A stretch of DNA of 64,000 bases, from NCBI RefSeq assembly GCF_052425735.1, contig NC_135765.1:31930001-31994000 (forward strand), written 5' to 3'. A program made the translations under genes and the position numbers. Position 1 is the first letter of the stretch. Each line of letters opens with the position of its first letter. Shown here piece after piece: positions 2,033-63,799 of the stretch. The notes under the pieces were generated by a model. The model did no database searches. It was not told the DNA's origin and was given only the letters and a program-made list of their open reading frames with translations. Origin of the DNA: Oculina patagonica (taxonomy: Eukaryota).

Positions 2033-5000
2033 ATGAGCGAGGGTAAGTAAAGTAAAATTTGAACAACTTTATCAGGCTTTAAAAAGCTTGCATAAGCATA
2101 AAAATTTACTACATATCAAGAAATTTATCAACGACTTTATGTTAAAGAAGCTTACTAGAGTTGTTTAAGCTAATGTAGACTTTAAAAGGTCGCTATTGAA
2201 TAAAGCTAAATGACTTACGATTAAACATAAGGCGTTTATGTGTTTATGCTTATAAATATTGTTTTTGAGAGCTCAAATATTTGAAATTCTGAACATGATT
2301 TCATGCGAGCGTACAAGTGGCACTCTGTGAACTGTGTAGAAATCGATTTCCGTAAGTCAATTCGTCAGGTCAGTTAGTTAATTGATGTTGATTTGTTATG
2401 GCTAATCAATAATCAATTGATAGCTACAAACAAAGAAAAGTTGTTTCATGTATAAACTTGTGTAGTTCATTAGAAGTTGCTGGTACAGTGGTGTCAATAT
2501 ATTATTACCCTAAAGGGAACTGAATATGGGCAAAATGTAAGGGTTTGGTTAGGGTTAGTTTTAGGGAAGCATTTATGCCTGGATGACAACAGAGGATAAA
2601 AACTGGTCCAAGTTATGAAATCTTTTGAACTGCAGCAAATTTTTGTTTATCGCGCCAATTTTTATCTGCGCACTGATTTTCTTTTCAAATTTGACCAAAG
2701 CAGGCCGACAAATCGGAGTGAGTTGACTGTCCTTTTGGCATTTATTGTATAATAAGGCAGCTAGCAGTATTAGTATAAATGTACATGTATGGTGGTTTTA
2801 ATTAATAATTGTAATTTTTATTTCAACTTCTCCTTAGGTTAGTACCTGAACAGTTTTGTCAACTGTCCATTTTCTTGTTACAGTGTAGTAGTGTACCTTT
2901 TTCCTCTGTCAGTATTAAAACAATGCCTGACTTCCTCTATGGCGCACGCGTGCAGGGAATCATGGTACAGTAGTTGTACTTATCAAACTATGTGCGAGAC
3001 TTAGCAACGATACCATGATTCCCTGCAGGCATGCGCCATAGAGGGAATCGGGCACTGTTGGTGAAAAAATTTCTTATGAAAATCAGTTTGGTTTGCATGA
3101 AAATGAACATATGTCAAATGAAACTTACTTCCAAGTGAAGATTTTTACACCATTTTGAAGCAAAGGCAGATGATAATTGGGACAAATGATGGAATACCGA
3201 TTTCTCGGAACCCTTGATTTCTGGTACTTTCCTTTAATCAAAACAAAAGATTTTACCCTTAAATTTGCTTCAATCAGTCAAACAATGCAATTCCCACCCT
3301 TCGCCGCTGATATCTCAAACTTCCGATTTCTTGAATTATCTTTAATTTCCTTTGAAGGCTCTGAGGCTCAAGAAATTTGAGCTTCCATTGTTGCCTATTA
3401 TGTTGTGTCAGACAATATAATGAATACAGTAAAAACCTGCGTATAAGAACACCTATTTTGGCGGTTCAGGCTGATTTGGTTCTTATATAAAGGGTTATAA
3501 TCTGCAAAATCAGCCTGTAAGTGTTCTTAAGTGTTCTTAAAAAAAGTTTCTTAAAATAAGGAACATACTAGGCTACCAATAGATGAAATCAATATATATG
3601 CACACAATAATTATTGTATTTTAATTTTAATAAAATTGATTAATCAAGGCAATACTGTACTGTAATTGGGGTGGAACTATTATGTGTGCAATGAAAAGTA
3701 GTGTTGATCTTTGATATTTTTCCATATAAGAACAACTTTCATTTTTCAGGCTGAATGTGTTCTTATATAAATGGTACTTTATTTCCTAAAATCAGGCCTG
3801 GGTGTTCTTAATCCACTTGTTCTTATACGCGGGTTTTTACTGTACCAGTAATATTACAAAGGTTTTGTTCAAGACAGTAATTAGCTCTAGATATTTAGTG
3901 TATATAACACAAAAGATGTCTTAAAACAACTCCACCTTGAGCTTGAAAAATTAATTTAAATGGTTCATGTTAGCAATACAACAGTAATTATATATTCTGT
4001 ATTTTATGCATGATTATAATGTGTGCATTAAATATAACTGGTGCCAACATAATGTCTTGGCTATGCATAATTAAGATGTGAAAATATTGGTAAATACTGC
4101 TCAGTTTTGAATGAATATTATCCTAAAGTTCAATAATAAATTATGGTGTTGCATGTTTTATTATAGGTATGAATTTTTCGTTTGGAAGAAGACAAGAAAA
4201 GATTGACTGGCGGAGGCTTGGTAAGAAACCACGGTGACAAAAAGATACCTAGTCCTTTAAAAAATTAGCTTTTGTAATTAGTTTTTGTCTAGATAAATAT
4301 GCTAATATAAAACTCAAAGGATCTACTAGGCGATTTTTCTGTTTAATTCATAATTTTGTACATATGGAACTTAATCATGGCAGCAAAAGGTAACTTACTA
4401 AATTAAAGTAAGGTTGCTTTAATACAGTTATGTTTATTTTGTTTTTATTATACAATATTTTACTGATTATGGATAAGCAGGATCTTCTATTCCTATCATT
4501 GTTAAGGGTTTTATGCACATGGGCATGTTTTAACATATGATTTTCCTAAAATTAACTATCACAATTCTAGTCTTTGAAGGGCTGGAATAATATAATATTA
4601 GGTCTGCATGAAAATTCACAAGGAAGATAAAATGTGTTTTCATCATTTTTGTACAAATGCAATGTCAGAATTGATACAAAATTTATTCCTAAATGTTATA
4701 TGATTATGCTAACATTTATCATCTAGAAAGGATGAACATTTAATTTGTTTGTCTCATGATACTAGATAGAGTCTTCATCAGGTGATAAGGTTGATTGTTT
4801 TGTCTAGACCTTCAGAATTTTTATCATCTCTTTCATGTCAATTTTCACGTTGTCCTTTTGAGGGGGAAATTATTTTATTTGCTTATTTATCTTTTAATGA
4901 TCATATTTTTTCTTCAATCAGCATCTGTGGATGTCGACAGGATTGTGAGAGAGATGGATGTAAAGACACTGCAAGATAACATCATGCATGTTACATTTAG

Positions 5001-8000
5001 CAACATAGAGGCTGAGCTGGTAGGTGCATTCATGACAGAATATTAAATTGCCACCTACAATAGGTATATTATGCAAATGCTGTTCCAGAGAGTGATATAA
5101 CACTGTTAAGAAATATTACACCATCTCTCATGCAATCTCGAGTGTTTGTTTGTTGATTGCGGCAAGGAAACATCTTGACAGAATCCCACCAGCTGGTCAC
5201 AACACATTGCAACATTTTTTTTGAGCAACAACAATAACTTAGTTTTTTGATGTTTTTATTTCTGTGCTCATTGTACAATATTAATGAAGTGAACAGTTCT
5301 CTTAATATGTGACACATAATGATCTGTTTCGGCAGGGAATGCAGGGTGCTGGTTTTGATCCAAACTATATCAAGTTATTTCGACTGGCACAGCTCATAAT
5401 CGAGTACCTTTTGGTAAGACATAGCTTTGTAATACAACCGAGTAGTCCCGCTTCTAAACTTTGACCATATTACTTTTTTTTGGGGGGGGGCTCCCATATG
5501 CAACGGGATGGCTTAGGGTAAGTGGCTAAGAACACAGTGAAGTGCCCACTTAGGAGAGGTATCCACCAGTTACTTGTATAGGACATTCTGTTAGCAGAGG
5601 TTGAGTTGCAGTTAATAATTCTTTCCCAATAAACCACAAGAGTGCAACATCCAGTCCCAGAATCAAAATGCAGCACTTGGATTCAGGTTTAGCAATTAAC
5701 GGTCTCAGTTGTCGTGTCTGTTGTCACTGTCGATTGGTCATGTTGTCAGGAAAAATGACAGATGTTGCTAGGCGGGAATTACAATGTTCTGACTTGGAAA
5801 AAAACAGACAGAACATTGTCATTGCCACCTAGCTACGTCTGTCATTTTGCCTGGCAACACAATCAATCAACCTGAATCCGCTATAATACATGCCCTTTCT
5901 AGCACAAGGGTTACATTTAAAGTTTTTTTGAAAAATTTAAAACTTTTATGTGGAGATTTAATCTAGGACAAGGCTGTGCTCTAAGGAAATTTTCTGGGAG
6001 CCCTTCAGGCTCCCAACCCTGCCAGGTAGGGTGCCCAGCCCTTTGGGTTGGTCGCCCAAACTAATTAATTATTCAATTTATTAATTATTCAATTAATTAA
6101 TTTATTAATATTATCATGGTTTAATAAGTTAATAATTAATTTACAATAAATTTAAATCATACAACCAATTAAGATTTGTTGTTGATTTTATTTCACAGCA
6201 CACTCACTATTCACACTCACTATTCTATTGTTTTTGTCAATACAGACCTAATACAGAGAGTTTGTAAGAGGTTTTATTTCGAATGATGACATTATGGTCT
6301 AACCCTAAACAAGTTGCAGGTCTCATTTTTTTTTTTTCATTAAAATTGACTAAATTGCAAATTTCATGGCATACAAATATGTAGTTCAACAATCAGAAGT
6401 TCTTTGTTACTTAAGCAAGCAAATACATTATCTTATAAGTATCAAAAACGAAACTGTCATTCCACAGCCTTAAACTCTAAATGTATCAGACGTAAATAAA
6501 AATTTAGTGTTCACTGCCACTGAAATTAATTAGTAAATCTGATAAGTAAATCTTAATGACGAACTTGCAAATTTCAGGGCATACAACAGCATGGTTGACG
6601 ATTTACACGACTGTAGTTTTACTGTAGCGGCTTTGTGAATCGTGAGTCAAAAAAGTGTGAATTCCAGTATGCCTGTCATATGAAACCCATCGAAATTTTC
6701 GCGCCAAAACGTTAGAATTTCTACCTTTTCGTAAAAAATTAATTCTTACTTTATCTAGTTTCATAAAAGAACGCCAGAGAAGTTAGGGCTAAAATCATTA
6801 ATTGCAAGCTTTTCTTGTTTCATCGATCGGTTTATTTGTCGAGAGTTTAAAAAAAATAAGAAAGTCGCAAGAATTTAAGAAAGAACATTTATTATAAATA
6901 GGTTGAGTTTCTATTCTTGTGACGGCTGAAAGAACCGCCATTTGAATGATAATCTGAGCCATGCAATTGATAAAGAAACGGACTGATTTAAACATGCAGA
7001 AATTTATGGAACTGCCAACAATCTTACATTTAAAATCTTTTTTACAGTTCACAAGGGTTTAATTTCACACACGGCGAAGTGATTGTTACTATTTTTAGCG
7101 GCCACCGCATTTTGACAAACTTGTGATATCCAACGAAAATTCCTTTATTAGCGTAAATATCTCCAAAGTTCTATTAAATATCGTTAGAAATTTCATTTGA
7201 AATTACCACAGTAAATCAAGTTGTAAAACAAATAAATTCCATTAAGCTGAATGACAACAACATTTTATCGAGATTTGCTTTAATTAGAGTGCAACAAGTC
7301 GTCGCTAAGGCTACGTTTACACGGACACGGTTATCAATCGACACGGTTTCATGACCTCGAAACCGCATCGAAAACGACACGGTTTCGAAGTGTTTACACG
7401 GAGCCTATTTAACGATTTTCCGACTGTTTTCGAATGTGATTGTATAAGCAAGCGCTGCTCTCTATGCTTGTTTCACCATGTTTACTCTTCGCAAGCCAGC
7501 CAGTACGTGCCAAAATACATGGCCGTTTTCAAATCGATGCGGTTTCGCCGTTTTTGACCGTTTACACGACAACGAAACCGTATCGTTTTGAAAACGCTCC
7601 ACTTTTGACAGCGTTTTCAAAACGACCCGGTTACAGTAGTGGTCTCGATCGGTGCCGTGTAAACGAAAGGCGTAACCGCATCGCTTTCGATGCGGTTACA
7701 AATGAAACCGTGTCCGTGTAAACGTAGCCAAAATTAATCTATTCCTTTGTAAACATCTCCAGACGCAGAAATTTGCATGTGCGAAGAATTTCATTTCATG
7801 CTAACACTAACTCACTGCCCTTACGAAAACTATTGATATACCAAAATAAATGGGAACTAAACCATCTCGAAGAAAAAAATCAAGATTTTTAACCCATATT
7901 ATTATATTTTTTAAAATGTTCGTGCGGTCCGTCACGTGCAAAGTCAAGCTTGTGTTAAATCATGTGGAACGAACTTGACAGCGCCGGCAAGCGTAAACAT

Positions 8001-11000
8001 TTGACTCCGTAATGTGTGGAAGGCTATTTTCCCGCGAAAAACATAATCAATCTGCAAAAACATAATTTTACAGTCAATTTCCTGCTATACTACAGTGTGG
8101 AACAGCGAACAAGAGGGCCAGCCGTGCCCGGCCGGGCCACCAGTTTTATTTTCTGGTCGCCCGAGAGCAAATGTTAGTCGCCTGAGGCGACCGGGCACCG
8201 CTAGAGCACAGCCTTGTAGGAGTTTAGAAACATTGTACACAATCATCTTGAAGTTTGCCTTCTCACAAAACACCTATTAATTTAAAGTAGACCAATAGTG
8301 GTAAGTATGAAGTAATTTCCAGTTCATTTTCCTTGTCAGCATTCTCAGCAGTTCCTGTCGGCAAGTCTTGAAGTAGAAAACAAAACACTGCAGGAATCTT
8401 TGGAGGTAAATAAAAGTTTTAGTTCACTAGTCAGGTTTAAATTGTTAATTTTGTTCTTGTTGCAAGAATTAGGTTGGATCATGATTTATCACTGCTGTAT
8501 TACAGGCAAATGAAAAGGCCAAGAAAGAACTAGAGGTGAAAAGGGAAGCTTACAAAAAACTAAAGAAAGAATGCCAGAAACAAAAGCAGTGGATTGCTGA
8601 GTATCAGCTTCTAATCAGGGCTGGAGCTAGTGGATCACATAAGGTACGTTTTGTGCGTGCACCTTGACATGGTTTTCCAAGACCTTTGATGTAAAGGAAA
8701 TAAAATTGCAGCACTTTTGTAGGATGGTTACATTTTCCTTCTATTTAAGCTTAGTGGCCCATCAGGTCAAATTTATCCTGGTTTCCGTAGAATTACTAAA
8801 GAAACAAGGGGTATTTTTTTACCCCATTCTGGATGGGATGCTAGTCCATCACAGGGTTACTCTCAGCGTTGAAATTTGCTGAATGCACATTTATACACCT
8901 GGGTAAAGAGAGGCTGAGGCATGACGAGAATAAAGTATCTTGCCCTAGTACTGTCCATGGTTGTTACCCAACCTGCTCAATCCAGAGTCTAGTGTAATTG
9001 GACCATATTGGTGAATTGTTACCTACAGTACGTAATCTGACAAAGTCAGGGTAACTGATTCCAGAGTGAAGTGCCAAAACTCATGAGCCATTGGGCATTC
9101 TAATAATTGCAACATAATTTAGTTAATCTTTTATTAATAATTGAAATTAATTTTTAGTGTCCATATTGCCCCAAGTCATTTGTGAGCCATGAGTACGTCA
9201 TAGCCCACCTGTCAAGGCGACATGGTGAACACTCAACCCAGATGAATGGAATGGTGATCTCGGCGGCACCTGTAAAATCCGTGGGTGCTGTTACCATGGA
9301 AACAAAACCAGGCATGACAGAGAAAGAGAAGAGTGATCTTGAGGAGGAGTTGGAAATGATTAAACGGAGACTGCAAAAAACTGAACGCGAACTTGAAGAG
9401 GAGAAAAAACTAACTCGATCACAGGTTTGAAACAACACCTTACAGCAGTCTTTGGTATGCACATTATGATTTTATCATCTGTTAGCACTGAACAGTGTTT
9501 TTAATCAGCTTTTATTGTTTGTTTACAGAGAGGTCAGTTGACGGCAGAAGATCAAAAGATTGATGAACTTAAAGCAATGTTTGATCAGTGGCAAAAGGAA
9601 GAAAAAGCTGAACAACAGGTAGGTTTCTTCCTCAACCAGTTGGCAAATGTTTTTGCTTACTCTTTGCACGCATTGCAGGCCTTGTGTTAAGAGGCTGTCT
9701 CTCTGAAAACCACCCACTCAAATTCATGTTATAAAATAATTTGGCTTGAAACTCTGGCAACTGAAAGACTTAATTGAGGCTTGAACTAAAACAGATTTGG
9801 TTTTTTTCAAAATGATATTCTGGCCACGTTAGGAGCCATTAAATATTTTGCCCCTTTGGGCCTGCCGTAACATCTTGAAAATTAGAAAAAGAGGCATTTT
9901 ACAAGCCACTGTAAAATATTTCATTTGCATCGAACACTGACAATTTTTATATCAATTTGTTCATTAACATTATTTTCTAGTTTTCTATTTTATAGCAATA
10001 GTGTTATTCTGTTTTTAATAGATCAGCAACTAGGTTATGCTAAAACAGTTAGACGGCTCGCTCTCAGTTTCTGTCATTTTTGATAGTTGGCTCAGGGCCT
10101 TGCCAACTATCAGCCATTATAGTTCACCACTAAATTTTCTCCGATTCTGATTGGTTTAAATTGAACACGTGACGCGATAGTGCCCTTCCGCCGGAGGGCA
10201 CTATCAGCCCATAGTGCCCTCCCGAGAAAAATGCCCGGATCGATAGTGCCCGCCCGTGACTTTTTTTGTAAACAAGCGTGCCTGCAGACAAAAAAACCCA
10301 ACCAAATTCACTGCATTTCGTGGGTTTCTTGTCTGGTTTTGTTTCGTTTGTTAAATTTCGGCTTTCAATTGAGTTTTTTATCCTGAAAAGTAAAAATAAT
10401 TCACCATGCTCGTTTTTGTATGTGCTCACGGAAGAAAATTTAGTGGTGAACAATAAAGACAATAGAGTGTTTCTGTCTCGGAACTATCGGTCTGATAGTT
10501 GCCCCTTGGAAATTTGATGTTCTTAAAACTAGCATATAAGCCCTCGAAGCTTCGCTTCTCGGGCTAATATTTGTTTTAAGAACATCAAATTTCCGCGGGG
10601 CAACTATCAGCTGATAGTTCCTCGACAGAAACACTCTATTGTTAAAATAGAAACCTTGAACTTGCCATCTAATTGTTAAATTTTACTCTCAAAATCTAGA
10701 TCAGAGAGTTCAGTTTCACAGGGTAATGAGTGACCCAAGACAGTGCAAATAATTATACTAACATGGGTGCAGACACATCTGTGGTCAGTTATTTTAGGGC
10801 TGTCAGATTTCGAAGGTGATGAGAAGCAGTCTGAGTAAGGTGATGGCTCAAAATTATTTTTTTTATTGCAGCAAGAAATGGCTGAGTTCAAGAGAACTTA
10901 CATGCAAGATATGAACAAAGTTAAAGCAGAGAGAGATAAGTTTTCTGCTGTAAGTTAATTTAAATTTTAGTTGGGCTTTTTCTCTATAAATAATTATAGC

Positions 11001-13435: not shown

Positions 13436-16400
13436 TGTCATCGTCATCATCAGCAGCATTAGCATCATCATAATCTCATCATCATCATCATCATCATCTT
13501 AGTTGTCATGATCTTAGTTGTCATCATCATCCATCCATTAATAGTTTGCTTTTTCTATTGTAACTTTAGATTTTATCTTACCTGTAAAGTGCTTTAGAAT
13601 AATTTTTCTATAATTGTAGCGCTATATCAATTAGATTATTATTATCATTATCCCATCTCCTCCTCGTGAAGAATGGGGCCACTGATCCTCCTCCTTCAAG
13701 CCACCCTGTGTATGGCTGCTATCTGTGCCTCCCCCCCCATGTCTTTAATCCGAGATCTGACACAATGCCATAAAAACCAAGCTCAAAATGTTATTTTTGG
13801 TTAACACTCTGGACTCTGTTGAAAGTTTGAGGGGTAACAGGTAAAAAAACTGAATACAACAAATTCAGATAAGATAAAATGAACAAATTGTCTGTCTGTT
13901 TTGGGCTTGTTCACAAAGTAATGAAACAGATAAAACCTTTAAAAGCGTGGATTCAAAGGTAATGGTTTGGAAACAAAGGAGCACCAAGTTTATACATGTC
14001 CTCTTGTGTATTTAGTTTCAAGAAATGTTGAGTCAGTATGAAGAAAACCTACAGAATGAAAGAATAGATAAGGATCGACTTTCTGGAGACTACGAGAACA
14101 AAATACAGACGCTAACCAAGGTAAGAATGTAACTTTCTTTAGCTTAAACAAAAATTTGTCTCTCTTGCTGCGTTCAGTTCTTCTCCTGCTCAAGAGATTT
14201 TCAACAGACCTGTTTCTGAATGGTTGTTATTTCGAGTGGAAATTCAAAAACTGAGCAGCAACCAATCAGAGACGTACATGGATGTCAGTTGAGTTACGTC
14301 ATCACTATGGAATTTTCTCGAAATTTTTCTATAGATCCGGTTGGTAATCAACAAAGTTACATCGTCGCCTTTTTTCCGATGTTACAAAATTACCTTAAAA
14401 TCGAAGTAAACATGAAAGTAAGAACTTATTAAGGCAAAAAAATAGAAGGGATAATTATAAACCTGGATGGATGGTTAAAATTGAAGAAAGTAAGATGAAA
14501 AATAGATGCGCCAATTGTGACGTGGCTGCTCTAGTTAGGAGAACAATTGCCTTCCTTATTTGGTTGGAATCCTGTCTCTGAGAATTTACCTAGCTCGCGA
14601 TTCTAGAGTTGTTGCTAAGTAACATGATGCGAGGTGACGTTGTCCTCGTGCTATTTCTGAATGGACATAAATCTGAATGGGACATTCCTTGCCCCAACCC
14701 CCTCTCCCCAAATTGATTGACTGGATGGTCTTTAGGGGTGTAGAATCGACCGCGGTCAAACGACAGAAATATGCAAAAAACAAGAAAAGTACATTAAAGA
14801 TAAGGTTTTAATTTTCACAGTATAAAGATTGGTACATAACCTGCTTCCTGGGGATTTACTAAGTTTTTTTGAGCTTTACTAAAAAAGTTCTACGTGTTGA
14901 AAATAGCGACATGAGGACTTGTCGGCGCCATTTTGTCAAAGCACTTTGGTTCGGATGCGGAACATTTAAAAAGTAAAAAGACTCGTTTACCTGTGGAAAT
15001 GGGAAAATGTTTTCCCCGCAGCAACTATTTTATCGATCCTTGCTCATACTAACTCTTAAGACGAACGAAATTCCCCGAAATAGGAAGAAAAGCTGCCTGT
15101 GCTTTTGACCGCGGTTAAGGTGTAGAAGTGCTACAAGAGGTCTTGTGTTTTACTTACCGCTAAATACTTCTTTTACAGCAAGTTCAAGATCTCAGCAATG
15201 CCCTGGAGTCGCAAAAGGTAAGAAAACTAATACTTACAGTACGCTGTAAGTTTCAATTCTCTGAAGTAAACTCTCTTGTTGAGTAAATGGACAACGAGTA
15301 ACAGGTTGGGTTGATGCTTCATGTCGTAACACTTGTTCACCTTTCTTCACTGAGTCAGGCAAGAGACAGGCAGTGGCCTTTACGTATCCAACAAGACATT
15401 TTCAAGGTCTTTCTACCAATTATATTACAGCAGCCCGATTCAATATACATGATTGATTTATATTTCATATTTTGTTTCTTAGCAGGTGGAAACAGACAGA
15501 GTTCAGTACACATTTAATACTCAGCCACCTTCACTCCTTGGTATGTATATCTGTTAAACTGACATATCATACAGCATAATTAACTTTGTGGTGTTCTGTG
15601 AGAGTGGAACTCGTGTATGCGGTGTTCACTAGGTAAGCATAACTCAATGTAGCAAATTTCCAATATCTTCTGAAAATGTTCTTTTTTTTCTGAGTTTTTC
15701 CCTGGGGGAGGGGGTGGAAATGCAAATATTTTATGAGTAACAATCAATAATTTTGCTGTATTTTGACATCTGTAGCTTCTACACCTCCCGTGCCAGCTCC
15801 AAGGCAAACCGAGCGGCCTGTTCAAGGTGAGTAGAACTAAGAACAAAAGTCAAAGTTGTAAAAAAATTCGATTAAAAAAGCTTCAAGCAATTTAGTTTAA
15901 ATGCAAGCTCTGTGTAAACTGAAATATAAAGCGATTTTCGATTGAGTGTCATAAAAAAACGAAACCAAAATTATCACTCTGGCCAATCTTAAAGGAAACG
16001 GATAATCCAGTGAACCAATCAAAACTCAAAGCAAATGCATGGAGCCAGTGTGAAGCGCGGGAAAACGTGTGTGAGCGAGTCATGATTAGTTTTGCTTTTA
16101 CTTCTGATTGGTCAAGAAAGTGGTGGGAGTTTTTTTTAGACCAATCACTCCGTTGTAATGCAAAACCAACGAAAACGTGAACAACTTCTGACACACAAGT
16201 GAAAACTACTCTACTAGTAATGGTTGTGAGTTTGGAGCAATTTGACATCTAGGGGAGGGGTGGGGTGGCGAATGATGGCCTAGATTCTCGCGAGAACGAA
16301 ACTAATGTCACAAGATAGTGGAATGTCGTACATCAAACTGTCAATAACCTCATGTCTCCAATCATTGTGTCTTTCCATTTATCGTTAGTTAATTAAAGTG

Positions 16401-19400
16401 TTTAATTGTCTTGTAGTATGATTCATGCAGCGAAAAGTTTAGTAAGTTTAAATGTTATTTTCCTCCAGCTGAGCCCAGGGAAAGGGAAAGAGCAAAATCT
16501 CCTGAAAAAAGTGTAACAACAGGTACGCTCGACATTTTGCGAATTTTTTTATATTTTTTTATTTTTTTTAATTTATTTATTGAACACAAAGAACACTGCT
16601 TACAACACAAATACATACACTACTTACAATGCTACTTACAATACTTATTACATTGTTTCTTCACTACTTTTGTAAACATTTCTTTTTGTTTTTATGCCAA
16701 CGGTGACGTATAATAAACAGTAAAAAAACCTCATCACACAGCTAAGTTTTATCAAAATAAGTACAGTACAAGTTTGATGTGTGGTGATAAAAATTTGACA
16801 AAGGGTGAAAGAAAGTTGATTTTAAATCCCTGGTCAAACGGCAACGCAAGTGGATGCAAGTAGACGCAAGTTGAACTGACGTACAAACTTGCGTTGGGTG
16901 GCCAAACGGACTCGCAAGGGCACGCAAGTTGTCAGAAAAGTCATTTCAATGATACTGCGCGCGCTGCAATTCAGTACTTGAAGTAAACAGCAAGACTTAA
17001 GTTTACTTGAATTGGGTGGCCAAACGGTAAAAAACTTGCGCCGACTTGCGTGCAAATTTTGATCTCGACCAAAGTGAACGCAAGTCATCGCAAGTCAACG
17101 CAAGTGCACGGAAGTCCTGGCCAAACGGAAACGCAAGTGGACATATGTTGAAAACTTGCGTCTCCGTTTAGCCAGGCCTTAAAGGTTCGAAATTATCACA
17201 CATCATTTGCACTTTCGTTTGTTTTTTGTTTTGTTTACAGGGGAAACCATAACTCTTTATGTATCGACAAACCAAACCAAGTCTGGACAATACCGCTTAT
17301 GGCGACAATCCTCCGATGGATCTAACGAATGGTCCAATCTCTTCGGTTTCTCTGCCTTCATAAAACCCACAGGGAACTTCACCTACCCGGTGTATGTGTT
17401 CGCCGCAGCGGGATCCCCGCACTGGCGACAATATATATCGGGGAGTTCCTCCCCGCCCAGCCCGGAGTATCGTCTAGACTATATGTTCTACTGCTCTCAA
17501 TCGTCTTTGCCCGGGACTTTGCAATATCACGTGCTAGAAGCGGGGAGTGTTCCTGTGATCAGATCGTACGTCTGCAGGAATAAAAGTGTCCCGGGATGGA
17601 AGCACAAGGGACTGTCGTTCTTTGCTCCTAAACAAGCTTTGGGCGGCGACAAAACACGTATGTAAAGGAATTGTTGTTTTAAACCTTTTCTGTTTTTACG
17701 TTGTAAAATATCACTTTCAAATCGAAGGAATTTGCACAATGACGCCGGGCAGCAGAGATAAGCAAAGAGATATGCGCGCGCAGTGCCCATTGGGAGATAG
17801 GGGGATTGCGTACCACATATACTGAGGCAATATTTACCACATTTTATGTGACGAGTCGTCTGCATGAGCAATTTTCGTATATGACAACTTTTATTTGTCA
17901 CATAAGAGCTAACACGCCAGCTTATCAACAAATATATTTGTCACATATAAAAATCCCAAAGGAAAGTAAAACGGATTACGAGGTTTTCTTTAAACTGGAT
18001 TTGTGATAATCGCATCAGTTGTTTAAAGTAGTCAGACATTTTAGGCTAAAATGGAGATTGCAGGCAACGTAGATCTTTTTGTTTGTTTGTGTATTTTCAG
18101 TAACAAGTGTTTCTGCATCGTTCGAATCTACTTTGACGGAGGACAAAGAGCAAGGTTTGTTCAACTCTGTGTTCCTTTGGTTGCTCAGTTAATGCTTTTA
18201 ACTGAGTCAAATGAATGACCATCGTGTCTCGACCATTTTTTGTAAAAACCAAAAACATCTCAACTTTGTGCAAAGATCGATAATTCTGATCTTCAATAAT
18301 TCCTTTATTTATAGACTTTGAGCCAAGTGAATCTGAATCTGAAGAAGAGGTCTCTGCTTCTGCAGTACCGAAAGTGTAAGTACCTTATTACATGAAACTT
18401 TCGCGACACTTAAATTTCGCGATTTTGCGAAAACTTTGTATTTTGAATCACTTTAATTTCCCGTTTTTAGGGAAGACACAATTTACATTTCTTGGCAATA
18501 TCATTTAACATGCCCTTGACTTAAATAAAACGACCTCATCCAAGGAACAATAACGCCAATGGACGGGTCTAAATCTCGGCAATAGCAACAACATATCTTT
18601 TCTCACCATGTCTACAAGTTATTTTAGTAGGTCATGCTTGTACGTGCATGAGTTATTGTCAGTCAATTTAGTGACGACGAAATGCATTTACATTAAAATT
18701 CCTTCCTTCATTGGTACTAAACTTATTCTTTCTTGATTATTGACATAGTGTGAGTCACTTAATTTTTGCGTCATGTTCGCGTCACTTTAATTTCGCGAAA
18801 TTAACGTGTCGCGAAAATTTCATGTAATAAGGTAGCTTTATACTTTAGATTTTTAAAACTTAAAAGAAAAACTTCGCAGAAAAAAAAACACTTTTTTAAA
18901 ACTTGTACAACATAGAAAACACTCATGAGTTTTCTGCTCAATATATTTTATTTGAATGGTCACACACTAGGGTTTCATCCACACACATAATAATTATATT
19001 ATTTATCGTATTGTTTTCAGTGAAGTGGAAGATGTTGATGCAAATGAAAGCACAGTTAGTGCTGAAGACGTCAAGGAAATAACTTCGTGAGTTCCCTTCC
19101 TCTACCTCGACTGTAGTAAAAACGTTTCTTTATAATTCATACACTTACGTCTGCCCTTTCCGTGTCCAAATATCTCCATGAAACTCGCACATGGTGCTTT
19201 AACCAATCACAACGTAGCTGTATTCTTCTCGACCAATGAGGTGCATGAAGTCCAAAACTGCACGTGATGTGATATCTGGTTCACGTGATATGTTATTGCT
19301 CTAAATATTAATTTTCTTCTTTGTCTTTCTTTTCACAGAGGGCTTTCCAGCTCTGAATGGGTGAGTTTTCCTATCGTTTTTTCTTTCCTCTGTAGCTAAT

Positions 19401-22400
19401 TGTAAACTGCTTCATAGTTCAGTGACTAGCTGAATGAAACTCATATTTTGTTGTTTTCACAGGGTACAGCCACTTTAGAAGTCGGAACGTTCCATCCAAT
19501 TCCCCATAATCAGTTAATAACAAGTAAGAATTTACAATGAAATGTCACTTGATAAAGTGAATATATGAAAGACATATTATATTATAGGTGAACTGCGGAT
19601 AAATGATGAAATGAATAAAATGATCCTCGCAAAAACCATCACCATTACCATCTGAGCCTTGATACGTTGGGAACAGGTCAACGTATCAAGGCTCGGTTTT
19701 TGATTGGTCAAGAAATTAGGGAAGCCAACAAAAAAATGTGAAAGTCAATCAAAAACTCTACGGAAGGACAGCGGCAGCGGCATTTGTTTGTTTTATTTTT
19801 GTAAAGCGGTGAAATTCGTAACTTCATGGATTGTCCTTGTTAGACATGAATAATTTTTATCTTATAACACTTTCCTTTTGCAGCTCGGTTCAACCACAGA
19901 TTTGATGAAGTGCGAGCGTGTAGACAGGAAATAGTTCAAATACTGGACCAGAAACTTTCTAAACAAGGACTATCGCCGGTGAGTACAGATCTTCTCTTAA
20001 CCTTTTAGAACTTTTGACGTCTAGAAATGAAAAATATTGCGATAACTAGCGAAGGCCACATTGCAAGAGAATGCCTAAAGGTGTTTCCTGGTTTTTTTTT
20101 TTTTTTTTTTTGGGAAGCTTAATCTCTCTAATGTTTCTGAACTTTCGGTTTGTTTGCAGGAAAATGGAAGGCTGTCTTCACAGAAGATGGAGGCCAAAAT
20201 GGCCGCCCTAAAAACGGAGAGACAAGCACGGAGCAAGGTGAAAAGAAGTTTTTTTTAACATTTTATAGCTGATGTATGGACAGCATGTTTCTTTTTAAAA
20301 CAGACCGTGCATTTCGCGGGGTTTTCTTTTACATTTGCCGCGAAACGTACAATCCTCTTTTTTCTTTCAACGGAGACAAATGTGCATAAAATTGTAAACG
20401 CGGCTGTGCGGTTCCTAATGTATCTACATTGCTTTTTTTGCTTTTATTTCTCTTCTTTCAGAAAATCAAGAATTTCACGGCAGTCAGACAACAGTAAGTA
20501 GTATGAGTTTCTTGGTATTCGCTTGCACTTTTAATCTCTACACTCTTTAAACTTCTCTGCACGTGGTGCGTGCTTATATTTATACATGTAAAACTTGTTT
20601 TGCTTTAGGTGTGTGGAAGAGTTGGAAGACATAATGAAGAAGACTTACCGTAGTGGAACACCAACAGGAAAACCAAGCTCACCAGGTTTGTGATGTTCTT
20701 TTGTCCTCCCTTCTACCTAGATCACAGGACACCCAACAATACTGGTTTGAATTTTTAGAACAATGCTTGACAAATGACAAGAACCCATTGGGAAGTGAGA
20801 ATGAGTGACATTGGCGAGGATGGAAATGGGTTTCAATCGTCAAATTTAAAACCACGAGAGTAATGCTAGAAACTTTAGCTTACGTTCCTTTTAAATTTTG
20901 TAAAAATCTTCTTGCAACATGGAACATATCTTAGAAATTGCTTTCCAATTTAGTAAAGTTTCTACTTTTTCGATCAGGACATTTAAGCAAATACGCATAA
21001 TATACAGCTGTATATTTTCTCCTTAGTTCCCGCGGGTCCTCGTCCCGGAACCCGTTCTCCCGCGAGTAAGCCTCCTACATTCAAGTCTACAGCAACCGCT
21101 GTCCGTACTTCCGCTGCACTGCAGCCAGGCCGGAAGTCACCTGCTCCGAGAGGGACCCTGGGGTCTACTGGGTAAGTATTGCAAAGAGTTCATTAATTTA
21201 GGGGGTGGGGGATGTCACCACACGTGCGAAGAACGTGACTCGCGACGTCACTCAACGACATTTTGTTGCCTTGGTAACCATAATTGACAGCATCTGGTGA
21301 ACAAACGTTTTCAATATTCGTCTGTTTTCTGTGTTAGATCAACCAGTGGTGGTGACATGACAGTTAGCGATAGATCCGTCACGGACCGCTCCTTCAGTGG
21401 CACCTCCGTTACTGAGCGGACTCTGAGCGAGTCGGAGGAGGAAGTGACCGACACTGAAGGATCACAAGACGAAGAAGAAGAAGAAGATTCCAACTGGGAT
21501 TCAGAAGAGTGAGTAGATAAAGGAAAGGAAAAAGTAAAGTCTGTGTTCGAGCCAAGTAGCTCATCCCTGATGGAGGTTATCCCGGAGGGATATTTTTACT
21601 CTCCCCTGGTAGGGATGCTAATCCATTGCAGGGTTACCCCCAGCAGTAAACTCGCCGGTACCCATTTATACACCTGGTTAGAAAGGGGCACTGTGAGAGT
21701 TAAGTTACTTTCCCAAAAACACAACACAATGACTCCGGCCATCTCGAACCCGGACTGCTCTATCCGAAGTCCAGCGCACTAACCATCAGGGCCCGGTTGT
21801 TCAAAGCACGATTAAGCTAGTCCAGGATTAGCGTGAAATTTGATTTCAATTTTATATAATTTTGTTAAGGTTTTCTGTTAATATTTTCTGTCCCACAGTT
21901 TTGACATGGACCAATCTCAAACGTAACAAAATATTAGCCTTGGGAAACCCTTTTAAACAAGAGAAATTAAAATCTTGATCATCTTTTAATCCTGGGTTAG
22001 CGTTAATCGTCTTTCGAACAACCCGGCCCAGGCCACTGGGCCTCCCACCTCACAGAAAAGAAAAGAAAGCATTTTTCTTTGGAAATTTTCGGAGTGTTCG
22101 GAAACTTTCGAAAAAAGTCGGAAATCTTCGACGGATGGTGATAGGTTTAATCCGTGTAGAGTTACGTTGTCATGAATGAAAGTAATATCACTCGCATGAA
22201 AGACGATATGAAAAGCCATCATGGGGTATTTCACGGCATATCACATGAAAGGATTGCATAAGTAGCTCTCAAAAACAAAATTTCACTTCTTGTTTTGTGT
22301 GGTAAGTTAATTTAAAGTAAATTTGGATCAAAATAACTATTTGTTACATGTAGAAAGTTCGTTTTTTAACGAATTAAAGATATGGTCGGTTGCGCATAGT

Positions 22401-26286: not shown

Positions 26287-29200
26287 TTAGTTGAAGTGAA
26301 ATTTGAACTGGAATCCTTCTCCAAATGGAAACCCGCCTTGATGCCAGTGATGGCCGCCACCGCTTTGTGCTTCTGGGTCAAGGGGATCTTCACCGCTGTC
26401 GTATTTTGCACGTTTTTCTGTTGAAAAAAAAAAAGAAAGAGAGAAAAAGAGAACAGTTAGATAAGTCCGTAAAAGAACTGACCACACTCCCTTTCCCCCA
26501 CAATACACCTTCGGGACTCTGCTCCCCCCCCCCCCCCCCCCTCCACTTCCCTCCCCCGCGCGCCTTTCAGCAACCCGTACTAATCATTTCCTTAAGCCCT
26601 GGCCAAACGGTAGCACAAGTGAACGCAAGTAATCGCAAGTTGAACTTGCGTACAGACTTACGTTTGGTGGCCAAACGGACACGCAAGTTTAGTCGCAAGT
26701 GCACGCAAGTTTGCAAAAAGCCATTTAAAATGCTACGAGGTGCAATTCAGTATTTGAAGTAAACTGCTGCAAAAAATACGTTAACTTGCGTTGGGTGGCC
26801 AAACGGTTCAAATTTGATCTCGACCAAACAAAACTCAAGCAAATGCAAGTGTACGCAGGTCAACGTAAGTGCGCGCAAGTCCTGGCCAAACGGAGACGCA
26901 ATTTTCAACTTGCGTCTACTTGCCTTGCCGTTTGGTCAGGGCTACAAAGCAATAACCACTCAGCCTTTTTTCGGCAAATTTCGTGGGATCACTCAAACAG
27001 TTCCCAACGATAATAACCAATCAGGAAACCGCTAGCGCACTGAATGACAGTGTCACGTCAGCTTTTCGTCACTAGATGACGTCATGTTGCTTAGCCACCC
27101 CGCTTAAAAAAAACGCGGGTTCAATAAATTCTCCGGACAGGAATCGATTATTTTTTATCATTTTTAAGCAAAATACGTAGCAAAAAACTTTTCCTACCAG
27201 GGTCAGTGAGCACTTCTTTAGCAGCAGCGATGTCAATGAACATTTTCTCGGCTTTCTTCTTATCATCACCTTCATAGTGATCAGGATGCCATTGTACAGC
27301 TAGCTTACGATATGACTTCAAAATTTCCTTCTTTGTTGCTGTCCTAAAAAACGAAACAACAAATTTCTTAGGGGCTAGACGTACTGTTAATAAATACTCT
27401 ATACAATATGTGAAGTAATATTTATCAACTAGACAAGAATTTCCTTAAATTAAAATCCAATAAACTGAACAATCTAGTTAAAAACCAGGAGACGACACAA
27501 AAAACTTATGTCCTCTTAAAAGCGTTACCTTTTCAATCCTAATATTTTATAATAATCCCGCTTCTGTGATTGCTTTTGTAGTTTTTGTGCTCTGTCAAGA
27601 CCTTCTTGAACCTAAAATCAATTTATAAAGTACACAACTATTAAGAATAAATGCGAGACAAGTCACTATATATGTTTGTTAATACTGTCGGTAGAATAAT
27701 AGCCATGTCACGAGCCAGTTGCAGTCGGAAACAATTCTGAGTTCTCTTGTCGGACAGGATTTGAACTCTTCGCTTCCTTCCAGACAACAATCAGCTACTT
27801 TAGCCACTTGGCTACCAAAAACTCGTACAGTCAACTCCCGCCTTGCGGACACCTCGCTACGGACAGGAGTTGAAGTCCCGGCGAATAAGTTACTGAAAAT
27901 AGAGCAGTTTACAATTGAGTAAAACCAAAACCAAAGTAATTACACTGGCCAATCACAAACGACACAGACAATCCAGTGAACCAATCAAAACTCGAAGCAA
28001 ATACATGTAGCTGGCTCGAAGCGCGGGAAAACGTGCGCGAGCGAGTCACGATTGTTTTTGGTTTAAGTTCCGATTGGCTGAGAAAGTGGCGCGAGATTTT
28101 GAAGCCAATCACAGAGCGAAGTAATGCAAAACCAAAGCAAACGCAAATTACTTTCGACACTCAATTGAAAACTGCTCTAACTCTCGCTACTAAGGACTTT
28201 CTCTATAGCGGATACCAAATTGTCTTACTTATTCTCACAAATTTTTTTAATGTTAGTTCTGAGAATTTGGGTCAAGACAATATCTCCTAGCTGATAATTT
28301 TCTTTATTCTCATCACATGTCTGCTTGATAATGTATTGATTTTTAAGGAGACGACAGATGCTTATCAGCCTACCTTGTGTAAGTGTTCATTGATAGTCTT
28401 CGCTTTCTGGTAATCAGTTACAGCTGTGGATAAACAATCAAATCTATTAAAAGATTAAAGCAGATTACAAGCACTCTCTGTTTTCTATCCTGGTGCGTCT
28501 GTTAAGGAGAGTAAACGCGGTAAAAAATTGGACCCGCGAAAACTAAAGGGCGCACAGCGCGCCATGACTCACCACGTTATAAGTTTGACATTTTGTTTGT
28601 TTTCTGTTGGCTTTTCAAACTTCCTGACCAATCAAATTGTTCATCGTCGCACGAGCTATTCGCACGTGCGGATGCTGCTTTGAACCTTCTTGATTGGCCA
28701 AGCAACAAGGACACCAACATAAAGCAAAACGTTGAACCTTTACAACTACGTCACAGGGTAATTCCTGTAGAAAAACGAAAGGGCACTGGTAAATAGAAAT
28801 GAAAACGACATTTTCGTACCTTCATCATACATCTCATTCAGTATGTGTGCTTCGGCTCTGTCGCACAATGCGTCAACATCGTTTTCGTCAACTTTCAACG
28901 CTTCATTGCACTGTTTGATAGCATCGCTGGGATTATTAAGCTGAAAAATACAACAAATAACTTTTAAAAAAGAAGCATATTAAAACAAGAGTTATGTGAG
29001 CAGTTCAGGGACATGTGGTTCATCCAATCAGATATCTGTCGCGTTCCAAAGTGTTATGACGTCGGCTAATACGTCATCAGGTAAGTCATGCTACCTAGCA
29101 ACAGCTCTGCAGAAGACTGCAGCCTTAGTCAACTTTTGCCCATTCTCATCCCCAGTCCTAGTTTCTAGGACTTCCGGTCTTCATGTATGTAGTCATGACG

Positions 29201-44841: not shown

Positions 44842-45499
44842 ATCTGCTTCTTCAGATCACTTGCTAGTTTTCTAAATCGCATCTGGCTTATGATGTTAAC
44901 AACATACCGTTCAAGAAGACCGCAAAAGTATAAAACAGGGGAATAAACAAATTTACGCAGTACGTGAACGTTCGTGCGCCGTCACGTGTCTCGTGACAAT
45001 CTGTCACGTCAGTCACGAATCCTCAACGCGCGCGCGAAGCGGAAATTCCGCGCGCATCACAGGCTTCCCAAGCTCAAAATTCGTCTTTTTGATGTGTTTT
45101 TGAGAGCCCTTCGGGCGGCCGACACTACATACGTAGTGTATGCGACAGCTTGTGTATATAAAGAAATGTATGGGAAAATTACGGGTTCTCTAAAATCGGG
45201 TAAATAACTATATATTTTGAAATAAAGTTTACCTACCTCAAATGTGTCGCTTACTTGTGTCTTGTGCCGAATTTGGAACCATTCCGACGCCATTTCGCGA
45301 AGTTATTATTAGAAGGAGAGACAACGACGACGTTACTCATAAATTTAAATATTCAAGCGATTTAGTTGACCGCGTAATTATTGATCCCTTGCAGTTATGC
45401 ATGAATAAACAACAAAGGTATAAAAGCGTCAACTAAGACAAAGAACTTTGCACTTTGTAATCGCAACGCCATCTTGGTTGACATGATCAGTTGGCGAAG
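44842..45499. promoter_or_regulatory. Bidirectional promoter between esterase paralogs 2 and 3
   Basis: Divergent ATGs ~660 bp apart. CpG-rich core with GTCACGTG, TCACGTCA and GCGGAA; TATAAAAG at 45419-45426; CGCCATCTT near 45467. Confidence 0.55.
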
Positions 45500-47308
45500 A
45501 TGACTTATCGAGCAAGCTCAAATGCCAGCACAAATTTAACAAATCCTCTCTTATCCATGAGTGAAGATGAGTCTGATTTGGAAGAATTTTTTTCATCAAG
45601 ACCATCTTCAATGAAAAAGAAGAAGAAAATTATTGCAATAACAGTCGTTTCACTTGTGGTTCTTGCCATCGTTGGGGGAATTGTATTTTACTTCGTGTCC
45701 AGAAAATCAACGAAACAGCCTCAAGAAATTCAACTTGAAATACAAGGCGGTGCGGTACGTGGGCAATACGAAGGGGACGCGGCAGTTTTCAAGGGGATTC
45801 CGTACGCGGTGCCGCCAATCGGCGGAAGACGCTGGAAGCCCCCAGAACCTTGTGATGTAAACAAATGTTGGAATGGAACTCTGGATGCGAGCAAATTTGG
45901 AAGCATCTGTGTTCAACAAGATACTAATAACCCTAAAGACCCAAGCAGAGTCATTGGAAGTGAAGACTGTTTGTTTGTGAACTTATGGACGCCAAAAGAA
46001 AGATCAACAGAAGAATTGCTGCCCGTTCTAGTTTATATTCATGGAGGTTACCTATTGTATTCATCTGGGAATTGGAAAGGAATACATCCTTCGCCCGAAA
46101 TGGTTTCTGAAATGAAAATTGTTGGTGTTTCTTTCAATTACAGACTAAATGCATTTGGTTTCCTAGCCTTGAAGTCGTTAGCAGACAGTTCGACGTCAAA
46201 AACCTCAGGAAACTATGGATTTATGGATCAAATATTAGCATTAAAGTGGGTGCAAGAAAATATTAAGAAATTTGGAGGTGACCCAGAATCTGTGACTCTG
46301 ATTGGACAAAGCTCTGGCGGTACATCCGAGATTGCGCTGCTTGCCTCGCCTAGTGCTGCTGGACTTTTCCATGGAGCGATTGTAATGAGCGCCTCGGCCG
46401 TTTTTAACAAGTCATGGGAAGATGCGGCTCGTGACAACAAGATCTTCGTGAACAACTCCAAGTGTGAGAGAAGCAGCCCAGCAGCGGAGAGAAAATGTTT
46501 GTACAAGTTGAGTCCCAAGCAAATACAGGACGCCATTCCATGGGACGTGTACCCATTCTGGCGCATGGCAGATCTAATGGGTCTTCCAACAAAAAACCGG
46601 TTTGACGGGGCTGTGGCAGTGGTGGACAAAACTGTCGTGTCAGACCCACCTCTCGTTGCCATGGCAACTGGAAAAGCTCATGATGTACCCCTGATTATTG
46701 GAACAACAGCTCAAGAAATTGACATTCAGCCTGTAATATTGTTCACAAACTCGAGCTATGGAGTTTACCGAAAACATGTCGAGGAAAAACTGCGTCCTTT
46801 TCTAGGAGACGATATAGGCAAGGTGCTAAGCATGTATAACGAAAGCTTGGTCAGAGGAGAATCTTTTCAGTTTGCCTACTCGTCCTTGGTTTCTGATCTA
46901 AGAGAAACTTGTCCGAACAATGCCCTGGCTCTAAATGCATCGAAGGGCTTCAAGAGTTCTGTTTACAGATACGTCGTGACTAACAGGCCATCGGCGCCTA
47001 TAAATCTAGTTGGCTTCCCTGCCACGTTTGCGTGTCACATGTGGGACCAGGTAGCATTTTTCGGTTTTCCTACTGAGCTTAATTACAAGCCTTCTGAAAA
47101 GGATAAGAAGTTCATGAAGGATCTCAGAAGAGAACTTGGCGAATTCATTCATAAGGGAACTGTTAAAGAACAATCTTGGAGGGAGTACCCAGAAAGTACC
47201 GCTCTTTTTACTGATAGTGGAGTCAGTGTTCCCAAAGAAGAATATCACAAAAGGCAATGCGACTTCTGGCTGGGCCGAGGGTTTTTCTCTTATGGATGGA
47301 TCAATTAA
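45500..47308 (+). CDS. Intronless type-II membrane carboxylesterase, paralog 3
   Basis: First ATG is at 45500 (the track start 45491 is TTG). Contains KKKKK plus a signal anchor, HGG, GQSSGG, GTTAQE and CHMWD; ends WIN*. Confidence 0.93.
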   Translation: MTYRASSNASTNLTNPLLSMSEDESDLEEFFSSRPSSMKKKKKIIAITVVSLVVLAIVGGIVFYFVSRKSTKQPQEIQLEIQGGAVRGQYEGDAAVFKGIPYAVPPIGGRRWKPPEPCDVNKCWNGTLDASKFGSICVQQDTNNPKDPSRVIGSEDCLFVNLWTPKERSTEELLPVLVYIHGGYLLYSSGNWKGIHPSPEMVSEMKIVGVSFNYRLNAFGFLALKSLADSSTSKTSGNYGFMDQILALKWVQENIKKFGGDPESVTLIGQSSGGTSEIALLASPSAAGLFHGAIVMSASAVFNKSWEDAARDNKIFVNNSKCERSSPAAERKCLYKLSPKQIQDAIPWDVYPFWRMADLMGLPTKNRFDGAVAVVDKTVVSDPPLVAMATGKAHDVPLIIGTTAQEIDIQPVILFTNSSYGVYRKHVEEKLRPFLGDDIGKVLSMYNESLVRGESFQFAYSSLVSDLRETCPNNALALNASKGFKSSVYRYVVTNRPSAPINLVGFPATFACHMWDQVAFFGFPTELNYKPSEKDKKFMKDLRRELGEFIHKGTVKEQSWREYPESTALFTDSGVSVPKEEYHKRQCDFWLGRGFFSYGWIN

Positions 47309-55763: not shown

Positions 55764-56435
55764 TAAATTCAGTTCAGGCCGTAACTCCACATGCTTTGTT
55801 AGCAATTCTTTTCTCCTATGTCTTTTTGGACCAATAAACCCGGTGTATTGGCAAGGACTATGCGAGCATGGATTTGTGATTTTCATAAATCATTCCTAAA
55901 TAACAAATCTTTCAATAGTCACTTGAAATTTTTGTTTACGTTATCAATCAGTCGCCGCTATTTCATTAAAACAACTGAAAAATAACAGTTTTTGTTTAAG
56001 AGTCTGACCCCCCACTTTGCATTGCGTGCCTGTTTTGTTTGAGCGGGAGGACCACAAAACTATTGTACATGATGGCAAACAGAGATACAAACTGAGAGGA
56101 GATAGACTTGTTTCAGCACAGATCGCGATGGAAACAGATTTCTTCTCGGTCGCTCTCACTGGTTTTGGGGGCCCCAAAAATGGCGGAGAAAAAGGTGAGT
56201 TCTGTGTACGCGTGTGAATGCTAGAAACAAGTCTTATCGCTTCTTATAGCTTCCACAGTTGTATCTCGAACGATCGCTGGAAGAAGCGTACGGACGATAG
56301 TTTTTGTGGGCGTCGCGCTCGAACAACAACAGGCGCGCAATGAAAGTGGGTGGGTCAGATTCTTTAAGTGTGTCGTGGTGTACTGTGGAAATTTCTCACG
56401 TTATAAAAGTTAAATATAGATCGCATTTATTAGCA

Positions 56436-56704
56436 TAGAGCAGTTTTCAATTGAGTGTCGTAAAACCAAAACCAAAGCAATACTCTGGCCAATCACAAAG
56501 GACACGGACAATCCAGTAAACCAATCAAAACTCGAAGCAAAACATGTAGCGGCACGAAGCGCGGGAAAACGTGCGGAGCGGCACGATTGTTTTGTTACTC
56601 CTGAGGCGAGAAAGTGGCGCGAGATTTTAAGCCAATCACTAAGCGTAGTAATGCAAAACCAAGCAAACGCAATAACTTTCGACACTCAAGTGAAAACCGC
56701 TCTA
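56436..56704 (+). mobile_element. CCAAT-rich MITE family, copy 6
   Basis: TAGAGCAGTTTTCAATTGAGTGTCG ... CGACACTCAAGTGAAAACCGCTCTA. Confidence 0.8.
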
Positions 56705-63658: not shown

Positions 63659-63799
63659 GTAAGTAAATCTCATATTCACAGACACTAAATTCATGAAGAA
63701 TTGATGGCTTTGAAAATTTTATACGGGTATTGTTAAAACGCTTACTGACACAAGTCTTCGTTTTGCAGCTTCGAGTTTGATGTTTCCCCCTGTTTGTTA

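Follow-up and report, generated by a model that had tools for sequence, protein, structure and literature searches.

DZIP1 is a cytoplasmic protein of the basal body and transition zone that serves cilium assembly as a conserved organiser of the ciliary base, and to our knowledge its architecture has been thought uniform across animals. The DZIP1 orthologue of the coral Oculina patagonica, which lies in the 64,000-nucleotide stretch of DNA analysed here (the window), contains a 417-nt exon (17241-17657) that encodes a whole additional domain. The question is whether this exon is a genuine and regular part of the mRNA, which fold it encodes, where the domain came from and what it may do. A preliminary description of the locus had taken it for a foreign, beta-trefoil-like or lectin-like unit spliced into DZIP1, possibly as a cassette exon. 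The exon is already included in RefSeq gene models; what is new is the recognition of the domain, of its fold and of its distribution. Taken as a whole, the data are probably best explained by an old, phylum-wide insertion of a domain in a constitutive exon, combined with a putative cytoplasmic binding module; the structural and evolutionary account in itself is very likely correct.

The exon lies within an open frame of 160 codons and is bounded by an acceptor with a long pyrimidine tract followed by CAG/G and by the donor CAC/GTATGT (slashes mark the splice sites). Both adjoining introns are in phase 1, cutting the codon after base one, and 16468-16522, 17241-17657 and 18101-18154, when joined (16522->17241 and 17657->18101), give one uninterrupted protein frame; the product that leaves the exon out (16522->18101) is in frame as well. 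In its length, its strong splice sites, its phase at both ends and the preserved frame upon skipping, the exon had thus been described correctly. Its GC content is 0.51 versus 0.37-0.38 in the introns on either side, and the exons around it are short, with 54-65 nt each (15483-15542, 15772-15831, 16468-16522, 18101-18154, 18315-18375 and 19022-19086). The exon and its nearest neighbours are:

17241-17657 (+), constitutive DZIP1 coding exon, 417 nt, phase 1-1, holding the whole inserted beta domain (from AG/GT sites, open frame, spliced contigs and RefSeq identity)

16468-16522 (+), short upstream exon in a low-complexity linker, donor CAG/GTACG (from tblastn of the full-length relative P0003 and of the Oculina RefSeq protein; contigs X3-22 and X6-26 extend upstream of 17237)

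18101-18154 (+), short downstream exon, 54 nt (from the joints 17657->18101 and 18152(+2)->18313(+2), both GT..AG and in all four runs described below)

18315-18375 (+), following short exon, 61 nt (from contig joints)

Logan assembled contigs from four public runs (X1, X2, X3 and X6) with three organism labels were mapped onto 15400-19600. GT..AG joints at 15539->15775, 17657->18101, 18154->18315, 18375->19021 and 19086->19339 were detected in all four runs, and contigs of 1.3-1.9 kb embed 17237-17657 between upstream and downstream exon sequence. The contig edge at 17237 can be explained by four bases, ACAG, which end both the upstream exon and the intron, so that the joint is 16522->17241; both junctions proposed for the exon, 16522->17241 and 17657->18101, are hence present in contigs. 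The runs were only guessed to be RNA, yet RNA is the only possible source of spliced contigs. In a Pocillopora run, one contig of 3840 nt contains an open reading frame (ORF) of 1067 aa that is uninterrupted and includes the domain. No skipping joint was seen among the joints listed for the four runs, in which assembled contigs may miss rare isoforms. Similarly, the domain is kept in every annotated full-length isoform that was retrieved (Oculina X1-X4, Orbicella X1-X2, Pocillopora verrucosa X1-X3, Nematostella X1-X2, several from Hydra, and Hydractinia X1-X4). The 417-nt exon is real and constitutively included in the mRNA.

The host is an ordinary DZIP1, present as a single gene in this coral:

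4166-24719 (+), coding extent of the DZIP1 orthologue, comprising Dzip-like_N, C2H2 finger, coiled coils, the inserted domain and a conserved C-terminal block (from tblastn of the RefSeq protein and of P0003, and Pfam Dzip-like_N matches)

About 28 coding exons were mapped between these positions on the forward strand by tblastn of two full-length relatives. The exon translation is 100% identical to aa 480-621 of Oculina patagonica XP_078380805.1 (LOC144663667), and the spliced translation equals the RefSeq protein of this species, with exons outside the domain at 90-100% identity. Dzip-like_N (PF13815) was found in the host relatives P0003, P0009, P0016 and P0017 at E 1e-27 to 1e-36, and the window exons at 4921-5431 are 94-100% identical to relatives bearing it. 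A single C2H2 finger can be read at 9158-9230 (C-P-Y-C ... H ... H), with weak Pfam zf-C2H2 matches, and PF25977 ('DZIP1', the C-terminal block) is listed in the precomputed annotation of the Oculina protein and its orthologues; the local Pfam scan did not report PF25977. RefSeq names the orthologues DZIP1 or DZIP1L, for example in Pocillopora. The gene thus shares Dzip-like_N, the single finger, the coiled coils and the C-terminal block with DZIP1/DZIP1L (Iguana), and the inserted domain lies within the disordered linker that separates the coiled-coil region from that block. At this linker position DZIP1/DZIP1L of vertebrates, amphioxus, hemichordate, molluscs, arthropods and sponge have no folded domain, and cnidarian DZIP1 is ~130-150 aa longer than the others owing to the insertion.

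The distribution of the domain was followed by sequence searches. A phmmer search of 1.84 billion representative proteins led to 29 matches, the full-length ones being DZIP1 proteins in which the domain occupies the same place; they come from a Pocillopora-type coral, the anemone Actinostola, the scyphozoan Sanderia and the hydrozoan Hydractinia. When the full-length protein served as query, Orbicella, Porites, Acropora, Actinia, Nematostella, Exaiptasia and Hydra were found in addition, along with DZIP1 of Ptychodera, Branchiostoma, several bivalves, Amphimedon, Strigamia, Centruroides and many vertebrates. The profile of alignment A1, which holds 19 cnidarian sequences, matches every cnidarian DZIP1 at 1e-47 to 1e-65 and, with all filters off, gave no match in any non-cnidarian DZIP1; in the full-length alignment the 131 columns of the domain are a clean gap in the nine proteins from outside Cnidaria. 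The domain is therefore absent from the sampled DZIP1 of sponge, hemichordate, amphioxus, molluscs, arthropods and vertebrates. This agrees with the view of the preliminary description that other DZIP1 lack it, and speaks against a general part of invertebrate DZIP1, since the non-cnidarian invertebrates sampled do not have it. The expected lineage-specificity was right as to restriction and too narrow as to extent: the domain belongs to Cnidaria as a phylum (Anthozoa, Scyphozoa and Hydrozoa) and not to the corals alone. In a maximum-likelihood tree of the domain Medusozoa stand apart from Anthozoa, and anemones and stony corals are recovered, so that the tree follows cnidarian taxonomy, as expected for vertical inheritance. 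The reading frame is intact from corals to Hydra, where a broken frame would have spoken against a real domain, and dN/dS (the ratio of nonsynonymous to synonymous substitution rates; Nei-Gojobori) was 0.05-0.09 against three stony-coral sequences, for example dS 0.74 and dN 0.06 against L009, which points to strong purifying selection on the domain.

In the 529-Mb genome the domain is single-copy, and neither DUF7023 nor DUF5648 has a match there. One extra genome match (L002) was discarded, having E 2 and four stops. When 5.8 billion proteins were searched with the profile for short relatives, the only matches were ORFs of exon size on cnidarian-type contigs, and other families were absent. 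Bacterial giant proteins of Ig-repeat or type IX secretion system type (P0021, P0023, P0025 and P0027-29) were matched by phmmer at E 1e-12 to 1e-4 and were rejected as a source because the matches are compositional: the multi-stretch phmmer matches of these surface proteins cover domain residues 15-90 (E down to 3e-12 for P0021, P0023, P0025 and P0028) and score ~0-2 bits per repeat with the family profile, and Pfam finds Ig-like, PKD and CHU_C domains in them. Single-sequence matches to beta-repeat proteins can evidently mislead.

For the fold, AlphaFold2 run on the single sequence gave an unusable model with a predicted local distance difference test (pLDDT) score of 35, and the run based on alignment A1 gave a usable one (pLDDT 89.5, predicted template-modelling score 0.83). 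This model is an all-beta, helix-free unit of ~130 aa with nine strands in three sets of three. Its parts are, in residues of the exon translation:

17243-17374 (+), blade 1, aa 1-44, with predicted strands at 2-10, 17-20 and 30-39 (AlphaFold2 model)

17375-17509 (+), blade 2, aa 45-89, the most conserved part (alignment A1 and AlphaFold2 model)

17411-17434 (+), conserved blade-2 loop motif G-S-P-[YHF]-W-R-Q-[YC], a candidate binding site (in A1 the columns of G, S, P, W, R and Q do not vary)

17510-17635 (+), blade 3, aa 90-131, with predicted strands at 92-102, 105-111 and 120-130 (AlphaFold2 model)

Invariant in blade 2 across A1 are F46, Y51, V52, G57, S58, P59, W61, R62, Q63, P71, P72 and Y76. 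The model bears out the folded, aromatic, beta-rich globular domain with three repeats that had been read from the sequence; the repeats are clear by structure (3 x 3 strands) and weak by sequence, as the thirds of the domain align in register with pairwise hhalign P values of 0.0014-0.06 only. Among PDB entries Foldseek, run with the model, found 9uj0_A as the sole notable match, and VIA-align against 48,161 PDB chains placed residues 351-488 of the same chain at Z 10.4, with the runner-up at 2.9; a phmmer search of the PDB sequences with the domain gave no match. AlphaFold DB clusters included uncharacterised eukaryotic proteins at template-modelling scores (TM) of 0.76-0.79, a DUF7023 protein at 0.70, many DUF5648 proteins at 0.62-0.68 and the C-terminal domains of several MACPF proteins. 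The ESM Atlas added DUF5648 clusters at TM 0.64-0.70, and the best Swiss-Prot AlphaFold models were DISP3 of human, mouse and chicken at TM 0.73-0.75. A beta-trefoil has twelve strands in three beta-beta-beta-loop-beta units (IL-1 and ricin-B type). This fold was rejected, as the model has nine strands, beta-trefoils appear in the Foldseek search of the PDB at TM about 0.2, and IL-1, IL-18 and trefoil lectins reach TM 0.13-0.23 at an rmsd (root-mean-square deviation) of 14-16 A. The earlier label 'beta-trefoil-like or lectin-like' accordingly loses its first half, and 'lectin-like' is a fair lead only, drawn from relatives with inferred glycan binding. From this confident model and its matches, the domain is best described as a predicted pseudo-threefold, three-bladed all-beta module of the DUF5648/DUF7023 fold class.

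DUF7023 (PF22894) is the sole Pfam family with a sequence signal, with sub-threshold matches in 12 of the 19 relatives (best E 1.1e-5). The resemblance is structural as well, since the domain aligns to the family member E4XKE2 with TM 0.70 and an rmsd of 3.8 A over 149 aligned residues, both structures being predictions; the sequence match, in contrast, spans only profile positions 36-126 of 185. DUF5648, which occurs in bacterial secreted enzymes and in the Bacteroidales MACPF toxins BSAP-2/3, resembles the domain in its ~130 aa, its threefold repeat and its aromatic-rich repeat pattern. It differs in being extracellular and bacterial, the domain lying inside a cytoplasmic animal protein, and in that conservation in the cnidarian domain centres on one blade instead of three equivalent sites. 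In the receptor-binding C-terminal domains of the O-antigen-targeting BSAP toxins, DUF5648 forms a three-bladed propeller, described as a beta-alpha propeller, for which glycan recognition was inferred (preprint 10.1101/2025.01.06.631476).

The C-terminal domain of PDB 9uj0 chain A ('Aegerolysin-L pore') is the only solved structural match and covers the whole domain at an rmsd of 3.9 A over 122 residues, yet at 13% identity and as the accessory module of a secreted pore-forming protein. The MACPF proteins of AlphaFold DB resemble the domain likewise through their C-terminal parts. Vertebrate Dispatched homologue 3 (DISP3/PTCHD2) has a similar predicted domain at residues ~780-980 (E 7e-7 to 2e-5); identity is 17-20%, both structures are predicted and the host is a multi-pass membrane protein. 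The DZIP1 and Dispatched families are both linked to Hedgehog signalling. Literature searches found no relevant paper on DUF7023, a family without known function, on the 9uj0 entry or on the DISP3 domain, nor one on the cnidarian DZIP1 domain, which carries no annotation in the RefSeq proteins. The domain thus falls outside Pfam membership of both DUF7023 and DUF5648 yet, as modelled, appears to share their fold: a known fold class in a new, cytoplasmic and phylum-specific setting.

The intron positions connect the five loci compared. In each of them (the window, the anthozoan-type L004, the scyphozoan-type L007 from a jellyfish metagenome and the hydrozoan-type L005 and L006) a phase-1 acceptor falls within the same codon. 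A phase-1 donor just past the domain is common to the window, L004 and L007, so that in these three the exon consists of the domain and a few linker residues, with domain borders coinciding with same-phase introns. In the hydrozoan-type loci (L005:2965-3552 and L006:2971-3489) the exon extends for ~47 codons to a phase-2 donor in a homologous codon, giving a 1-2 exon that is not skippable in frame there. The simplest reading is an ancestral 1-1 exon whose downstream intron was lost in hydrozoans. The module would have been acquired by DZIP1 a single time, ahead of the Anthozoa-Medusozoa split, most likely as a phase 1-1 exon inserted into a phase-1 intron, and would then have been inherited vertically under strong purifying selection. 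Of the earlier idea of a 'foreign' domain gained by exon shuffling, the symmetric phases fit an insertion; no donor was found, and 'foreign' is still an inference.

Other explanations of the exon and its origin have to be set against this insertion. A chance ORF, or an artefact of annotation, that encodes no real domain has nothing found in its favour and is refuted by the frame intact from corals to Hydra, dN/dS below 0.1, the spliced contigs and the confident fold prediction. With a regulated cassette, DZIP1 function would be switched between cell types by coexisting isoforms that have or lack the domain. The 1-1 structure, which keeps the frame on skipping in this coral and is common to anthozoan and scyphozoan-type loci, would allow it, and assembled contigs do drop rare variants (83 joints exist besides those listed); with the skipping joint unseen in the joints listed, the domain held by the annotated full-length isoforms of six species and a frame shift upon skipping of the hydrozoan 1-2 exon, we regard a cassette as very unlikely, and the corresponding suggestion of the preliminary description was not borne out, as all assembled transcripts and annotated full-length isoforms keep the exon.

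As to origin, the domain might have been ancestral to metazoan DZIP1 and lost separately in sponges and bilaterians. The fold turns up sporadically in eukaryotes, a sponge protein and vertebrate DISP3 among them, which suggests an old module, and ctenophore and placozoan DZIP1 are outside the sample. Amphimedon and every sampled bilaterian DZIP1 lack the domain, however, with a clean alignment gap, and at least two independent complete losses would be needed where one gain suffices, which makes this history unlikely. DUF5648 being mostly bacterial, horizontal transfer of such a module into a DZIP1 intron of the cnidarian ancestor is conceivable in view of the consistent structural TM of 0.62-0.70 and a feature-based Atlas search that ranks DUF5648 first (0.88). 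It is nevertheless highly improbable, for the best structural matches are eukaryotic (TM 0.76-0.79), the sole sequence-level family signal is DUF7023 with its structural match in the tunicate Oikopleura (E4XKE2), the phmmer matches to bacterial Ig-repeat proteins are compositional (~0-2 bits per repeat with the profile), and no bacterial sequence relative was found.

A single insertion of an exon before the cnidarian radiation therefore stays the preferred explanation, and several observations weigh against it or against its functional extension. No donor gene and no non-DZIP1 sequence relative was found among the 1.84 billion representatives or in the profile search, and searches of the coral's own genome with the domain, its profile, DUF7023 and DUF5648 gave no paralogue; without donor or paralogue, the exon phases are what the shuffling route is read from. 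The non-cnidarian DZIP1 sampled were those of a sponge and of bilaterians, which leaves an older origin followed by losses some probability. With respect to the fold class, the domain of the window scores 17.9 bits (E 0.0026) against the DUF7023 gathering cut-off of 27 bits, and all relatives fall below it; the DUF5648 (PF18885) hidden Markov model gave no match to the domain at E <=10 nor to the 19 relatives at E <=1. Compared with DUF5648, the domain has its nine strands arranged 3 x 3 and TM 0.62-0.70 to many models, and the family is described as beta-alpha while our model is helix-free. Finally, the characterised or inferred relatives of the DUF5648/DUF7023 fold are all secreted or extracellular. 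As DZIP1 is cytoplasmic, glycan binding of such relatives cannot be assumed for it.

For the function, a partner- or ligand-binding module is our best guess, and a tentative one. The invariant blade-2 loops (G-S-P-x-W-R-Q and P-P) would make up a single main site, through which the domain would tether DZIP1 to a cnidarian-specific partner at the ciliary base, a protein or, possibly, a glycan or lipid head group. Since conservation centres on the blade-2 loops and is not spread over three equivalent sites, one specific site is suggested, and with it a protein or single-ligand contact more than a multivalent lectin. A farther-reaching proposal sees in the module a ligand-binding propeller of the cytoplasm, related by descent to the DISP3 domain and DUF7023, that serves a phylum-specific interaction at the ciliary base; it has to be called doubtful. 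Docking to a structure found only in cnidarians, such as the cnidocil apparatus of stinging cells, or recognition of a lipid or glycan cue tied to signalling of the Hedgehog type, may be considered. If this holds, a fold otherwise familiar only from proteins that are secreted or extracellular would have been re-used inside the cell. The locus places the DUF5648/DUF7023-type fold, found otherwise in secreted bacterial proteins and pore-forming toxins, in a cytoplasmic animal protein. It also offers a neat natural case of a domain gained through the insertion of an exon, added once as one clean exon and kept in every sampled cnidarian lineage, and the exon offers an experimental handle on needs peculiar to cnidarian cilia, the cnidocil included.

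The intron upstream of the exon contains a miniature inverted-repeat transposable element (MITE):

16828-17180 (no strand), intronic MITE of ~353 bp, non-coding, with imperfect ~24-nt terminal inverted repeats and TTAAA on both flanks (repeat-type contig depth)

It ends 60 bp upstream of the acceptor of the 417-nt exon, as had been noted before. Searching the coral's own genome gave 1047 first-look candidates, 40 of which were scored, and full-length copies were 80-88% identical; the MITE is a young, high-copy intronic insertion. Because the domain predates the cnidarian radiation, so recent an element has no bearing on its origin, and the proximity of the two, although real, is irrelevant in this respect. 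A 14-nt inverted repeat (86% complementary; 16775-16788 and 17192-17205) brackets the MITE; it may be fortuitous, or the MITE may be nested within an older palindromic element.

A further dispersed repeat in a DZIP1 intron, at 15923-16245, reaches a contig depth of up to ~1e5 in RNA-type runs, and its frame shares the motif W-P-I-x-x-D-T-D-N-P-V-N-Q-S-K-L with frames at 27940-28287 and 56420-56818. It is probably a member of an abundant transcribed transposon family or one resembling short interspersed nuclear elements. Elsewhere in the window, 45482-47305 holds an intronless ORF of 608 codons with carboxylesterase/cholinesterase-like sequence and an N-terminal hydrophobic anchor. Frames at 60778-63685 on the forward strand resemble exons of a Cys-loop ligand-gated ion channel: 60778-60999 shows an N-terminal motif of the ligand-binding type, followed by transmembrane helices at 62703-62993 and 63290-63685.

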